Below, piece by piece: positions 14,876 to 21,106 of a DNA stretch of 64,000 nucleotides. Made by a program: the position numbers and the translations under genes. The stretch's first letter is position 1; each line of letters opens with the position of its first letter. The notes beneath the pieces were generated by a model. It saw only the letters and a program-made list of their open reading frames with translations. It ran no database searches and was not told the DNA's origin. The stretch comes from Schmidtea nova (Eukaryota): positions 530,968,001 to 531,032,000 of the forward strand of contig CM097882.1 of assembly GCA_044892505.1 (NCBI GenBank). The letters run 5' to 3'.

Positions 14876-15677
14876 TGTTTCAGCCAAAGTTTGCCTGAGC
14901 AAACTTTGGCTATTTTTTGTGCGTGTTGTATTTTATTTTAATCTATCAGCGCCTGTGTGCGCTGCTGTCTTCTTTACCGCGTCTGTGTGCGCGTTCCTAG
15001 TTGGAGATGGAATTGGTATATGGTGGTAAATCTGATATTTTAGATTGGATTTAATTTAATTGATTTTTTGTAGATTTAATATTTTTTAGATTTCGTTGTT
15101 TTAATTTTTCAATGGATTTTTAATGGCAATTTAGTTTAATGGATTTGAATTTAGTTTCGATATTTGGAATTTTTATTGCTCGCTTCTTGTTTCTTAGATT
15201 TTTATGGATTGTTTATTCGCATGAATTCGAATTTTGATTTGGATTGAAATTCAAACGTTTAAGCCTCAAAGATATTGCAATTGACTATTCTTTTGTATTT
15301 GTTAGAATTATTTTGATTAATGTCTCAAGAAAATCTCAAATTATCGACAAAAGGAATATTGAAAATTAATTTAGATAATTCAGTTTCGATTTGGGTAATG
15401 AAGGAATTGTGCTTGTTTGTTGTGCCTCAAGTTTTAAACCCCGATTATGGTCTCTTTGAAATGTATCCTGAATCAAGACTCTGCTGGTTTAACAAAATGA
15501 TATTTGATGACGATTTAACCCAGTTTAATCTGATCGGTAGATTGTTTGGTCTTGCAATTTACAATAATTTTATGATTGATCCTCACTCTCCTCTTGTAAT
15601 GTTCAAAACATTGTCCAATGAAACGGCTATGCTAGATAATAAAATTCTCGAAACATTGTTGCGTTTTGTCAAAAACA
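14876..15677 (+). repeat. 5' LTR (802 bp) containing a HECT E3 ligase fragment (~15427-15612)
   Basis: Starts TGTTTCAGCC and ends GTCAAAAACA; no differences from 20305-21106 seen by eye. Encodes VLNPDYGLFEMYPESRLCWFN...FNLIGRLFGLAIYN (HECT N-lobe, HERC/UBE3A-like). Confidence 0.92.
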
Positions 15678-15681
15678 AAAA

Positions 15682-15699
15682 TGGTAGCAGAGCGTGGTT
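15682..15699 (+). promoter_or_regulatory. Primer-binding site, initiator tRNA-Met
   Basis: TGGTAGCAGAGCGTGGTT, 4 nt after the LTR end; complementary to the 3' end of animal tRNA-iMet. Confidence 0.88.
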
Positions 15700-15879
15700 C
15701 CCATCGGGGGACCACGTGCTTCTCGGAAAATGGACAATACTGTTCTGGCTATCCAGCCAGAACAAGGTACCTTTTCTTAATCTATGTTTTTGTAATATCT
15801 TTGTACATTATTTTGAACTTTATTATTGTAAATTTTTATCCTGGGTTAAAACATTTCCCCCTCTGCCCTTTACCATGTT

Positions 15880-17826: not shown

Positions 17827-20262
17827 TTGCAACAATTGTTAAAGAAATTGCCAGCTTCGCTACTTATTCGATGGAAAAGAGAGCAAGCGAAAGATGAAGG
17901 GGAAGAATCAATAACCCGGTTAAAAGAGTGGTTGCAAGGCGAAGCTGATCTTACGCGATCGACAAATGAGATATTATATGGATTTGGGCGTGAAAAAGAC
18001 TCTAATTGGCAGTACGGGCAGAAGAACTTCAAGGCTTCCGAAAAGAATGACAATAGAAGGTACTCACACTTTACGAACTCGGGCAATGAAGTAAAACAAA
18101 ACTCGAGTAAAGGTGGGGAAGGAATAATCATGCAACAAGGTCAAAGCAGGTCGATGTGTTTCCAATGTCCGGGTGCACATTATCTAGATCAATGCTCACA
18201 ATTCAAACAATTGCCAGTAAAGGACAGAAAAAAGTTAGTTCAAGAGTGGAGATTATGTTATAACTGCTTAAGAAAAGGACATGGAGTGAGAGAATGCACC
18301 AGACCAGGATTTTGTAAGGAAAAAGACTGTGGGGGAAAACATCATAGTTTGTTGCATAGTCGAAGAGAAAAGGAATCAGAAGAGGACAGCAATCAAAAAC
18401 CCCAAACACATGTTACTAGAATGGTTACAAATAGAAAGTCAAATGATATGGGTTACATAAGCCTCAGGACGATACCTATCATTTTAGAATCGAAGGGAAA
18501 AAGAATAACGGTCAACGCATTACTAGATGATGCAAGTACGGTTAGTTATGTTAGTATGTATGTGTCTAGAGAATTGCAATTATCAGGATCAAAAGTTAAT
18601 GTTCCAGTTAGAGTAATAGGAGGCAAAAGGGAAAATTTGGAGGCGCAGAGAGTCACAATGAACTTGATGAGTGTAGATGGTATGATGGTCAAAGAATTTC
18701 ATGCTTGGTCGGTAGCGAAGGTAACAAGTGATTTGCGAGTGACCGATTGGAAAAAAGCAAGTCAGAACTGGGACCATTTGAGACGAATCAGATTTGCAAC
18801 GGCTGGAAGTAGGTTATCGGTAGATGCGCTTCTTGGGGCTGACTATGCAGGTCTACAAAAAGCAATTAAAGAGATATGGGGACGTGAAGGAGAACCGATA
18901 GCTAGGTTAACTCCATTGGGATGGACTTGCATCGGGAAAGAACGATCAAGCATTCCGAGCTGTGGACAGACTCACTTCATCCAATCATATTTTACAACAA
19001 ATGAAGTGTTCCAACAACAGCTCCAGCGATACCAGGAAGTTGAAGAAACACATACAGAACACATGAGGTTTTGTCAAAATGAAGATAACATAATAAATGA
19101 TAACATATTTGGTAAAATGGATGACAGTAAAAGGACAGCCGAGAATAAAAGTTTGTTAATGGAGACTTGTCACAGAGAACAGTGTGAAGAGGAATGTATC
19201 GAGAGTTTTGCACCTAAAGCTCAGGAAGTAGTTCTTGGTGAGGTTCGGACTGGTGATGGTGACTTGAATTCAGGTCGAGGTGAGAATAGCGCAGCGAATA
19301 GTGGTGTGTCTAGTGAAAAGGTGGGTAACTCTGAGTCGGTTGATATTGCAAGCAAAGATGGAATAAATACTTCTTCAAACGATTTAGTGCAAGAAGTAAT
19401 GACGGAAATTGAACCTACAATGTCAGTAAAAAATGAGCAAGCAGTAAATGAATATAATTTTGAAGAAAACTGCATTGTCGATGAGAAAATTGTAGAAAAT
19501 ATTAACGATATTAAAGAAAACTGCATGGTCGATGAGAAAGTTGTGGGAAATATTAGCGATATTGAAGAAAATTGTAATTTTGAGGAAATTATTGGAGAGA
19601 ACTCTTTTAATGGTGAAAACATTAGGCAAGGAATAGTTGAAAATTCCAATGTTGATAAAAGGGACGAAGGAAAAGTTAATAAAAGTGAAACAAATCTAGA
19701 AGATAATGGAAAAGTTATAAAAAATGTCAGTATAAAATGTGAAAAAGTAGAAACGATTGAACTTATAAATTGCCCAGTTATAATTGCAGAGAAAACAGGT
19801 AGTGAGCAGTCAGCTTATCTTCCGATAGAAGGTAAAGATGCAATTAGTGGCAATAAAATGGAATCATTTGACAAAGTTGATCATGGTTCAACTGTTGATA
19901 ATGAAGTTCTTGTTGACAAGTCGGATTTAGTAACACGACTTCATTCAAAGATAGAAAATCTTGAAAGTAAAATAAAAACGGGCGAATTGGAATATAAAAG
20001 TGAAATTAAAAGGTTAGAAGAAAAGATAAAGAATTGTGCGGAAACTGAAGAAATGTCAGCAGTGGGAACGAGATATGTAAACAATATTAGCGATAAATTG
20101 GCAACAGTAAATTTGGAAATAAAAATGTCCATATGTTGGAGGAGGTGTATCCAGGATACCATGAGAGGATTATTGGCTGAAGAAAAGTTCAGGGAAAGAT
20201 ATAAATATAAGCCGAAGTGGAAGAATAAAGTTAGGAATTTGAAGGTTGGCCCCCAGAGATGA
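17827..20262 (+). CDS. BEL Gag C-half, zinc knuckles, aspartic protease, acidic unknown region and integrase C-terminal remnant; same frame as the previous ORF, separated by one TAG
   Basis: CFQCPGAHYLDQC and CYNCLRKGHGVREC..C...CGGKHHSLLH knuckles; NALLDDASTVSY protease; terminal CWRRC...KPKWKNKVRNLKVG resembles the BEL DUF5641 W.RW...R.KW....LKVG motif. Confidence 0.88.
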   Translation: MQQLLKKLPASLLIRWKREQAKDEGEESITRLKEWLQGEADLTRSTNEILYGFGREKDSNWQYGQKNFKASEKNDNRRYSHFTNSGNEVKQNSSKGGEGIIMQQGQSRSMCFQCPGAHYLDQCSQFKQLPVKDRKKLVQEWRLCYNCLRKGHGVRECTRPGFCKEKDCGGKHHSLLHSRREKESEEDSNQKPQTHVTRMVTNRKSNDMGYISLRTIPIILESKGKRITVNALLDDASTVSYVSMYVSRELQLSGSKVNVPVRVIGGKRENLEAQRVTMNLMSVDGMMVKEFHAWSVAKVTSDLRVTDWKKASQNWDHLRRIRFATAGSRLSVDALLGADYAGLQKAIKEIWGREGEPIARLTPLGWTCIGKERSSIPSCGQTHFIQSYFTTNEVFQQQLQRYQEVEETHTEHMRFCQNEDNIINDNIFGKMDDSKRTAENKSLLMETCHREQCEEECIESFAPKAQEVVLGEVRTGDGDLNSGRGENSAANSGVSSEKVGNSESVDIASKDGINTSSNDLVQEVMTEIEPTMSVKNEQAVNEYNFEENCIVDEKIVENINDIKENCMVDEKVVGNISDIEENCNFEEIIGENSFNGENIRQGIVENSNVDKRDEGKVNKSETNLEDNGKVIKNVSIKCEKVETIELINCPVIIAEKTGSEQSAYLPIEGKDAISGNKMESFDKVDHGSTVDNEVLVDKSDLVTRLHSKIENLESKIKTGELEYKSEIKRLEEKIKNCAETEEMSAVGTRYVNNISDKLATVNLEIKMSICWRRCIQDTMRGLLAEEKFRERYKYKPKWKNKVRNLKVGPQR

Positions 20263-20281
20263 ATAGGTCGGTTGATCCGCT

Positions 20282-20304
20282 AGAAGGGATCAAGGTGGGG
20301 GAAA
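20282..20304 (+). promoter_or_regulatory. Polypurine tract
   Basis: AGAAGGGATCAAGGTGGGGGAAA directly abuts the TG of the 3' LTR. Confidence 0.8.
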
Positions 20305-21106
20305 TGTTTCAGCCAAAGTTTGCCTGAGCAAACTTTGGCTATTTTTTGTGCGTGTTGTATTTTATTTTAATCTATCAGCGCCTGTGTGCGCTGCTGTCTT
20401 CTTTACCGCGTCTGTGTGCGCGTTCCTAGTTGGAGATGGAATTGGTATATGGTGGTAAATCTGATATTTTAGATTGGATTTAATTTAATTGATTTTTTGT
20501 AGATTTAATATTTTTTAGATTTCGTTGTTTTAATTTTTCAATGGATTTTTAATGGCAATTTAGTTTAATGGATTTGAATTTAGTTTCGATATTTGGAATT
20601 TTTATTGCTCGCTTCTTGTTTCTTAGATTTTTATGGATTGTTTATTCGCATGAATTCGAATTTTGATTTGGATTGAAATTCAAACGTTTAAGCCTCAAAG
20701 ATATTGCAATTGACTATTCTTTTGTATTTGTTAGAATTATTTTGATTAATGTCTCAAGAAAATCTCAAATTATCGACAAAAGGAATATTGAAAATTAATT
20801 TAGATAATTCAGTTTCGATTTGGGTAATGAAGGAATTGTGCTTGTTTGTTGTGCCTCAAGTTTTAAACCCCGATTATGGTCTCTTTGAAATGTATCCTGA
20901 ATCAAGACTCTGCTGGTTTAACAAAATGATATTTGATGACGATTTAACCCAGTTTAATCTGATCGGTAGATTGTTTGGTCTTGCAATTTACAATAATTTT
21001 ATGATTGATCCTCACTCTCCTCTTGTAATGTTCAAAACATTGTCCAATGAAACGGCTATGCTAGATAATAAAATTCTCGAAACATTGTTGCGTTTTGTCA
21101 AAAACA
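20305..21106 (+). repeat. 3' LTR (802 bp), second copy of the HECT fragment
   Basis: Direct repeat of 14876-15677; ORF 20749-21144 is identical to the start of 15320-16000. Confidence 0.92.

Follow-up and report, generated by a model that had tools for sequence, protein, structure and literature searches.

A recently inserted BEL/Pao-type retrotransposon in Schmidtea nova encodes ubiquitin directly before Gag and carries pieces of further host genes

We analysed a 64,000-nucleotide stretch of the Schmidtea nova genome (GenBank assembly GCA_044892505.1, contig CM097882.1, positions 530,968,001 to 531,032,000 of the forward strand; hereafter the window), which is AT-rich and contains a retrotransposon flanked by long terminal repeats (LTRs). 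The results showed that this element belongs to a sub-clade of BEL/Pao elements that code for ubiquitin directly before Gag, with a leader peptide that varies between members at the N-terminus, ahead of ubiquitin. In the overall reading that we favour, with a probability of about 0.6, it is a recent, non-autonomous BEL/Pao element in which ubiquitin acts as a processing module, and recombination with polyubiquitin mRNA drags in passenger pieces of other host genes. The features of the element are listed in Table 1.

Ubiquitin ahead of Gag in a BEL/Pao sub-clade

The full ubiquitin repeat in front of Gag was recognised by Pfam at 2.2e-28 in a first scan and at 1.2e-29 in a later one, and 69 of its 76 residues are those of host-type ubiquitin. 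The seven changes (positions 19, 25, 28, 29, 52, 55 and 57) spare the C-terminal tail, the hydrophobic patch and six of the seven lysines, namely K6, K11, K27, K33, K48 and K63. The Met codon is kept and the LRGG end is followed by Asn, which gives the arrangement of a ubiquitin fusion, with a fold ending in Gly-Gly, a direct joint to the partner and a next residue other than Pro. In cells, linear fusions of ubiquitin are cut behind Gly-Gly by deubiquitinating enzymes, except where the next residue is Pro. In the AlphaFold model, ubiquitin formed a confident beta-grasp fold (pLDDT 84-90), which Foldseek matched to ubiquitin with TM up to 0.98, and the RGG junction was a low-confidence hinge, followed by three long helices and the all-alpha DUF1759 domain.

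Upstream of the full repeat lies the tail of the preceding one, with 3 of its 14 residues changed, two of them among the last six. This tail and the end of the full repeat match at 28 of 42 nucleotides, and because the differences are mostly synonymous, two neighbouring repeats of one polyubiquitin mRNA appear to have been copied, with no duplication within the element. An earlier note on this DNA had described polyubiquitin fused to Gag; the position before Gag was correct, and the polyubiquitin amounts to just one repeat plus the 14-residue tail.

The same arrangement was found in at least eight relatives from six other samples (ENA ERZ2271731, ERZ27314303 and ERZ5540424; JGI 3300013315 and 3300033082; and the sample of protein P0361), where contigs L002-L007 are short metagenome contigs of retrotransposons. 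Their Gag proteins are about 27-43% identical to that of the window, and the ubiquitin-Gag junction was seen in seven independent contigs or proteins. P0241, the metagenome protein of L002, was the best match to the Gag-protease (41% identity) and has the same spacing from ubiquitin to DUF1759 as the window. From the same sample came L003 (protein P0242), an autonomous element with DUF1759, RVT_1, Peptidase_A17, rve and DUF5641, in which the ubiquitin ahead of Gag was recognised at 4e-11 with one interruption. P0361, found in an exhaustive search with linker and Gag, has ubiquitin and Gag; P0362 starts inside ubiquitin, and its contig L007 has the whole domain (Pfam 6e-22). In P0400 (L005), 77 unmatched residues precede ubiquitin and Gag, and in P0363 (L004, ENA ERZ27314303) a 65-residue piece of the HSP90 middle domain (about 700-895; Pfam 2.7e-12) lies directly upstream of ubiquitin-Gag. 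P0367 (L006) starts with a remnant of the Gly-Gly tail. A search for further ubiquitin-Gag loci in metagenomes gave 592 pattern matches with no relative among them.

When 27 linker-plus-Gag sequences were placed in a neighbour-joining tree, which omitted P0363 because its match was split, all ubiquitin-bearing tips formed one clade with 98% bootstrap. The sequence past Gly-Gly, an acidic run and then a basic motif, is homologous across the members, and the junction falls at the same homologous residue. The same sequence, as Met, acidic run and basic motif, is the very N-terminus of three relatives without ubiquitin (P0366, P0370 and P0442). Gly-Gly is retained in seven of the eight clade members, and the residue after it is Asn, Gly, Ser, Ser, Met, Gln or Ser, never Pro. 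Because ubiquitin is common to relatives with only 27-43% Gag identity, including an autonomous element, its place ahead of Gag appears to be an inherited feature of the lineage and no fresh capture. The ubiquitins diverge from host ubiquitin by 9%, 20%, 26%, 50% and 52% in members that resemble one another in how far their Gag has diverged. Pfam still picks out ubiquitin where only 48-50% of its residues match the host protein, and the Gag of these members shows about 40% identity to that of the window; this would require purifying selection on the ubiquitin fold.

We also considered that ubiquitin has no role and that its abundant mRNA entered the 5' end of such elements in many separate captures. 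The wide range of identity to host ubiquitin (48-91%) would suit repeated capture, as would the scarcity of shared changes, since the window ubiquitin has a single change in common with P0400, at position 19, which varies among host ubiquitins too, and no change in common with P0363; pestiviruses, moreover, acquired ubiquitin independently several times (PMC13517609). However, independent captures would have had to reach the same homologous Gag residue in every member and to fall within a single clade, and they fit badly with a fold that is recognisable at 48-50% identity beside similarly diverged Gag and with the retention of Gly-Gly in all members but one. We therefore regard repeated capture as very unlikely.

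Table 1 Features of the element (positions of the window; a dot marks features without strand)
Feature	Positions	Strand	Basis or remark
Whole LTR element	14876-21106	+
Left target-site duplication, GTATG, 5 bp	14871-14875	.	same 5 bases at 21107-21111
5' LTR, 802 bp, TGT..ACA ends	14876-15677	+	100% identical to 20305-21106
HECT-domain piece, UBE3A/E6AP-like, start of N-lobe, within 5' LTR, out of Gag frame	15395-15631	+	Pfam, PDB
Primer-binding-site-like sequence, TGG start, 4 nt past 5' LTR, then short hairpin	15682-15697	+
Long frame, first in-frame ATG to final stop: leader, glutathione reductase, HSP70, ubiquitin, Gag, protease, tail	15916-20262	+
16-nt leader motif with GGGCCC palindrome	15919-15934	+	identical at L003 120-135, in another frame there
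Glutathione-reductase piece, 63 aa around redox-active disulphide motif	16000-16188	+	PDB; may start at about 15958
Mitochondrial HSP70 (mortalin) piece, about 206 aa	16195-16812	+	Pfam HSP70 2.8e-79
Tail (14 aa) of preceding polyubiquitin repeat; first codon overlaps end of HSP70 piece	16810-16851	+
One full ubiquitin repeat ending LRGG, joined directly to Gag	16852-17079	+	Pfam
BEL/Pao gag-protease gene, one in-frame stop, no frameshift	17080-19098	+	Pfam, tblastn
Acidic low-complexity tail, about 370 codons (1.1 kb), Gag frame, in place of pol	19156-20262	+
Polypurine tract adjoining 3' LTR	20292-20304	+
3' LTR, 802 bp, with second HECT copy at 20824-21060	20305-21106	+	identical to 5' LTR
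Right target-site duplication, GTATG	21107-21111	.

The long reading frame and the captured host pieces

The two LTRs are identical over their whole length, and the identity breaks off exactly at both repeat ends. Because the LTRs have not diverged, and the target-site duplication, the primer-binding-site-like sequence and the purine tract are intact, the insertion is very recent. In these respects, as in the direct TG..CA repeats and the short duplication, the element has the structure of a BEL/Pao element. An AATAAA signal lies about 35 nt ahead of the end of the 5' LTR, and a near-perfect 14-nt inverted repeat (a hairpin, 14876-14915) directly follows the terminal TGTTT at the LTR start. 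No second copy was found within the 64-kb window and none in the protein collections searched, where the nearest Gag relative was 40% identical and exact look-ups of two ORFs of the window gave no record; no tRNA gene occurs in the window.

The gag-protease gene encodes an acidic and basic N-terminus, a helical linker, a DUF1759 capsid-like domain (Pfam 1.1e-8), Cys/His knuckles (weak zf-CCHC, 0.042) and an aspartyl protease (Asp_protease_2, 0.001), which is the Gag-protease architecture of BEL/Pao. A protein search gave 145 homologues, many of them with Peptidase_A17, and tblastn with the polyproteins of six autonomous relatives matched only 17011-19098. Searches with Pfam, the relatives' polyproteins and the integrase open reading frame (ORF) of L003 detected no reverse transcriptase, RNase H, integrase, Peptidase_A17 or DUF5641 in any frame of the element; reverse transcriptase, Peptidase_A17, integrase and DUF5641, the pol domains of BEL/Pao, are present in L003. 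Classed by its Gag-protease alone, the element is thus a non-autonomous BEL/Pao derivative. Since reverse transcriptase, RNase H and integrase have been lost and the insertion is nonetheless recent, its copying would have depended on enzymes supplied by an autonomous partner. The tail in the place of pol contains a 51-nt tandem repeat at 19457-19609. It gave no match in Pfam (even at E = 5) or PDB, and neither the integrase ORF of L003 nor the six relatives' polyproteins matched it. The idea that the end of the tail is a remnant of integrase and DUF5641 found no support in the latter two comparisons.

A single gene of L006 (ENA ERZ5540424, 272-3322) encodes Gag, two CCCH zinc fingers, the protease and a CFAP58 coiled-coil piece (1.7e-18). 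Because this piece stands where pol belongs, L006 points to a frequent origin of chimeric non-autonomous elements within the ubiquitin-Gag clade.

Upstream of ubiquitin, the long frame contains two pieces of other host genes, and a third lies in the LTR. The glutathione-reductase piece corresponds to residues 32-94 of the human enzyme and matched PDB glutathione reductases at 1.1e-14, far better than thioredoxin reductases and thioredoxin-glutathione reductases. The HSP70 piece spans positions 208-420 of the 599-position profile, which takes in the linker together with some of the nucleotide-binding domain before it and the opening strands of the substrate-binding domain after it. The HECT piece (about 75 residues; Pfam 4.6e-10, profile 4-76 of 306) lacks the catalytic C-lobe, and its best solved relative is UBE3A/E6AP (PDB 1c4z, 3.3e-14). 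It occurs twice because it sits inside the LTR, and would have come there by a separate event. All host pieces are in sense orientation on the plus strand and align with proteins without gaps, and the absence of introns is judged from protein alignment alone. The end of the HSP70 piece and the start of the ubiquitin tail share a Lys codon, as judged at the protein level.

The HSP70 piece was searched alone, since a joint query with ubiquitin was swamped by polyubiquitins. Its nearest matches are mortalins of triclad flatworms: it is 83% identical to a mortalin-like protein of Dugesia japonica over 210 residues with no gaps, 82% identical to transcript contig L001 (Logan SRR33002330), and about 72-74% identical to the proteins of parasitic flatworms and molluscs; by this piece, the host is probably a planarian. 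No parent gene nearer than 83% was found in the collections searched, and at the DNA level the nearest mitochondrial HSP70, L001, is 72.6% identical over 647 nt and comes from another species or is too distant. With the nearest parent DNA at just 72.6%, passenger status was judged by counts at invariant columns. Within the captured span, 111 columns do not vary across 87 mitochondrial HSP70 orthologues, and the piece is altered at 13 of them; of 145 columns conserved to at least 95%, it is altered at 23, and two planarian orthologues at 4 and 7. These two orthologues have 93% identity, and at the 203 sites on which they concur, 32 changes are peculiar to the window piece. No complete catalytic domain with intact invariant residues was found for HSP70, glutathione reductase or HECT. 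The HSP70 piece is thus best read as an old, non-functional passenger, and because of their shortness (63 and about 75 residues) the glutathione-reductase and HECT pieces cannot be catalytic. Together, the three look like truncated, mutated passengers without enzymatic function.

The frame that runs through these pieces has about 1,459 codons, with a single in-frame stop, within gag, and no frameshift. In the Gag frame, the glutathione-reductase, HSP70 and ubiquitin pieces contain no stop in 374 captured codons, compared with 29 and 48 stops in the other two forward frames, and no indel occurs across about 350 aligned residues (210 + 76 + 63) despite about 10% amino-acid change. In a simulation, the probability of no stop in the captured block was 0.11 at K = 0.05 and 0.26 at K = 0.03. 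The open frame fits translation that starts upstream of the pieces, and this fit is suggestive only. In-frame ATGs are found at 15916 and 15958, the latter in good context. Replacements amount to about 12% at the HSP70 invariant sites and 9% in ubiquitin, which would imply roughly 5% neutral nucleotide divergence since capture. Because the captured pieces are about 5% diverged and the LTRs not at all, the chimera is probably far older than the insertion and would have been copied repeatedly after it formed.

The 16-nt leader motif was found by alignment with L003; it has one match in the window, with none expected in shuffled sequence, and it is exact despite only 43% identity between the two Gag proteins. 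A blastn search for leader homology gave nothing past the ubiquitin region. The motif is probably a cis-acting RNA or DNA signal and a candidate for packaging or dimerisation. By its match in L003, the native leader reaches at least 15934, and the captured block of about 0.9 kb replaces about 0.15 kb of leader.

Translation might instead start at the ATG of ubiquitin itself, with the glutathione-reductase piece, the HSP70 piece and the repeat tail forming a long 5' untranslated leader that is open by chance or youth. The Met codon kept by the window ubiquitin and the simulated chance of 0.11-0.26 speak for such a start, and in both L007 and L002 a stop lies shortly upstream of ubiquitin. In L002, L003 and L004, however, ubiquitin has no Met of its own, and L003 and L004 have a frame that continues without a stop a long way ahead of it. 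Because of these relatives, we consider that ubiquitin is internal to a longer translation product, a setting in which a module for cleavage would be of use. The window element agrees with them in its two upstream ATGs, in the contrast of 0 stops with 29 and 48, and in the absence of indels, and we find a start at ubiquitin doubtful.

The earlier note had been accurate in most of what it saw, namely the identical LTRs with target-site duplication, primer-binding site and polypurine tract, the recent insertion, the four host fragments, and three of them in the Gag frame over some 1,460 codons with one stop. Intronless capture of mRNAs by a BEL/Pao element also stands as far as sense orientation and gapless alignment to proteins alone can carry it. 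Where the note saw an element assembled from host genes, the host pieces are real, and the core is the Gag-protease of a defined BEL/Pao clade. Its explanation was a serial capture of four transcripts, each retained by selection, for example as chaperone or ubiquitin help for Gag or as a source of small RNAs against host genes. Such a history would account for sense-oriented pieces of which three are in frame without a stop and three belong to protein quality control, for an HSP90 piece acquired independently by L004 at the same position, and for the conservation of ubiquitin ahead of Gag. But ubiquitin was inherited rather than newly captured, which leaves no series of four; some part of selection is supported by the conservation of ubiquitin, whereas the other pieces are smaller than a domain, the HSP70 piece contains no working part of a chaperone, and the HECT piece lies out of frame in the LTR. 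With HSP70 DNA at 72.6% identity to the nearest planarian orthologue (the gene of the host itself was not compared), small-RNA targeting has no support either. Serial capture with selection on each piece is thus unlikely.

A proposed role of ubiquitin in processing and template switching

In the reading that we favour, ubiquitin would serve in processing. A cut behind Gly-Gly by deubiquitinating enzymes of the host would free a Gag whose N-terminus matches that of the relatives without ubiquitin, and anything translated upstream would be harmless after the cut, provided that it is in frame. Such a cut is in keeping with the retention of Gly-Gly and the lack of a following Pro, with the changes of the window ubiquitin, which avoid its C-terminal tail while the functionless tail of the preceding repeat has 3 of 14 residues altered, and with the hinge at RGG in the model. 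The ubiquitin stretch would also offer the reverse transcriptase homology with co-packaged host polyubiquitin mRNA. During minus-strand synthesis, a switch onto this mRNA could refresh ubiquitin and copy the tail of the preceding repeat, and the return to the leader through non-homologous switches could pick up other mRNAs, those of mitochondrial HSP70 and glutathione reductase here and that of HSP90 in L004. We propose that foreign pieces stand directly upstream of ubiquitin in both elements because of such return switches after the jump to polyubiquitin mRNA. Recombination of this kind is supported by the mainly synonymous differences of the preceding-repeat tail, by the uneven divergence of ubiquitin among members with similar Gag divergence, by the scarcity of changes in common and by the shared Lys codon. 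The frame through the glutathione-reductase and HSP70 pieces would then stay open since translation of Gag begins upstream. Template switching driven by microsimilarity is known to create multi-parent chimeras inside LTR elements, and later non-autonomous elements (PMC5131818).

Several points weigh against this reading. Cleavage after Gly-Gly is a prediction, and P0361 has Glu-Gly where the others have Gly-Gly. The gag of this copy has an in-frame stop, and the copy may yield no full Gag. The divergence of the window ubiquitin (7 of 76 residues) is about that of the dead HSP70 piece at its invariant sites (13 of 111), which gives no sign of recent constraint, and chance could leave the frame through the captured block open with a probability of about 0.11 at K = 0.05, so that its openness is only slightly surprising. 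Microhomology was judged at the protein level alone, and the glutathione-reductase and HSP70 junctions rest on one assembly and a single copy.

With a single copy known, the mosaic could also be an assembly chimera, in which reads from host genes and a retrotransposon were misjoined. Perfectly identical LTRs within a matching 5-bp duplication would hardly result from a misjoin, nor would a single frame across all the junctions; furthermore, the pieces are diverged from real genes, not identical to them, and the ubiquitin-Gag junction recurs in seven independent contigs or proteins. An assembly error is therefore scarcely credible.

That two elements each have a chaperone piece at the same site exceeds what mRNA abundance would lead one to expect, and the template-switching model leaves this unexplained; abundance alone would favour mRNAs of ribosomal proteins or translation factors. 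A mortalin-like HSP70 is present in the planarian stem-cell proteome (PMC3058083), and the captured set may mirror the type of cell, or its state of stress, where particles are made. As a tentative extension that we hold with low confidence, ubiquitin would be both a joint cleaved by the host, which separates Gag from anything translated ahead of it, and, by its homology with polyubiquitin mRNA, a standing gateway for exon shuffling into the 5' coding leader. The recurrence of chaperones would then not be chance, and would arise through selection or through a particular cell state, such as stressed or stem cells whose particles are dominated by chaperone and polyubiquitin mRNAs.

The window contains further mobile and gene-like sequences. 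A giant Ty3/gypsy-like retroelement on the minus strand occupies 42000-62000 and runs past 62 kb, with no LTR pair in the window. Besides a gag-like ORF (60197-61381) and a TRAF/MATH ORF (43974-45356), it encodes a pol of 1,930 aa (48248-54040), in which RVP, RVT_1, RNase H and integrase precede ankyrin repeats, and two neighbouring ORFs (54044-56665) together show homology to a viral fusion glycoprotein of the Monjiviricetes type. The element is reminiscent of the giant planarian 'Burro' elements (PMC6431247) and is the second retroelement of the window with host-like and virus-like genes. Adjoining it on the minus strand is a 153-aa ORF with a C3HC4 RING finger (63104-63565; 5.5e-12).

On the plus strand, the window contains a nuclear-receptor C4 zinc-finger fragment (1814-2296; 7.3e-8), a piggyBac-type transposase ORF without the first 76 or so profile positions (9351-10442; DDE_Tnp_1_7, 4.1e-46), a fragment like organellar or viral type-B DNA polymerases (27452-27916; 7.4e-7), possibly a Maverick/Polinton-like remnant, and an intron-free 322-aa ORF of a rhodopsin-family G-protein-coupled receptor (32597-33565; 7tm_1, 3e-12) with no exact record in the collections searched. 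An AT-rich unit of about 57 nt occurs in five degenerate copies 2 kb upstream of the insertion (12477-12815), and just downstream of the element are ORFs of 367 aa (21925-23028, minus) and 442 aa (23462-24790, plus) without a Pfam match. Runs of N occupy 29028-29235 and 30774-31126.

Related systems and significance

Among known systems, the mosaic falls with the LTR-mediated retroposition chimeras (Tan et al. 2016, PMC5131818), an example of which is a mosquito retrocopy flanked by BEL18_AG. It shares with them partial, sense and apparently mRNA-derived host sequence between LTRs, which replaces internal element sequence, as well as the possible combination of several parents, the possible continuation as a non-autonomous element and the common occurrence of in-frame ORFs. 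Unlike them, the window element has its pieces upstream of a Gag-protease that is kept, instead of in place of the ORF, and has one piece within the LTR; its pieces are old relative to the insertion, and its 'captured' ubiquitin is an inherited, conserved part of the lineage.

Non-autonomous LTR elements of the LARD/TRIM type and gag-only elements share with the window element intact LTRs, primer-binding site and purine tract without polymerase or integrase, and in each case a recent insertion implies mobilisation in trans; unlike these elements, the window element retains the capacity to code for Gag and protease and has a 1.1-kb unmatched ORF tail in place of pol. Maize Bs1-type elements are likewise non-autonomous and still retrotransposable, with several cellular gene pieces in one frame with gag-like sequence; unlike the window element they are plant Ty1/copia-type and have no ubiquitin processing module, and the likeness is one of description, with no sequences compared. 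These LTR elements, as reportedly described by Elrouby and Bureau in 2010, carry fragments of several host genes.

Natural ubiquitin-fusion precursors, that is, polyubiquitin and the ubiquitin-ribosomal proteins, also have a Gly-Gly end that is peptide-bonded to the next protein and is followed by a residue other than Pro. Cells cleave these precursors co-translationally. In the window, by contrast, the partner is a retrotransposon Gag, and a variable leader peptide comes ahead of ubiquitin. The ubiquitin inserts of pestiviruses supply a site that is processed by host enzymes. Cytopathogenic pestivirus polyproteins carry host ubiquitin and DNAJC14 inserts, often mosaic, at a few permissive sites (PMC13517609); here too an RNA element that codes for a polyprotein gains host ubiquitin by recombination with cellular RNA, and a fragment of the chaperone system is the other recurrent insert. 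In contrast to the window element, pestiviruses are RNA viruses with an RNA polymerase, and their inserts are evolutionary dead ends, whereas ubiquitin is stably inherited across a retrotransposon clade; this likeness is again by description, with no virus sequence compared.

That LTR elements pick up host transcripts, and RNA viruses ubiquitin, was already known. Full-text literature searches found no description of a retrotransposon clade with stable ubiquitin before Gag, which is no proof that none exists, and PMC3118150 makes no mention of ubiquitin; the stable inheritance of ubiquitin ahead of Gag across such a clade appears to be new. For annotation, matches to ubiquitin, HSP70, HSP90, glutathione reductase or HECT inside elements of this kind should not be taken for host genes. 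If our reading is true, retroelements would have a third route of polyprotein processing, besides their own protease and 2A-like skipping, which uses host enzymes. It would explain why some elements tolerate host exons, and would bear on exon shuffling and on the entry of host domains into mobile elements.

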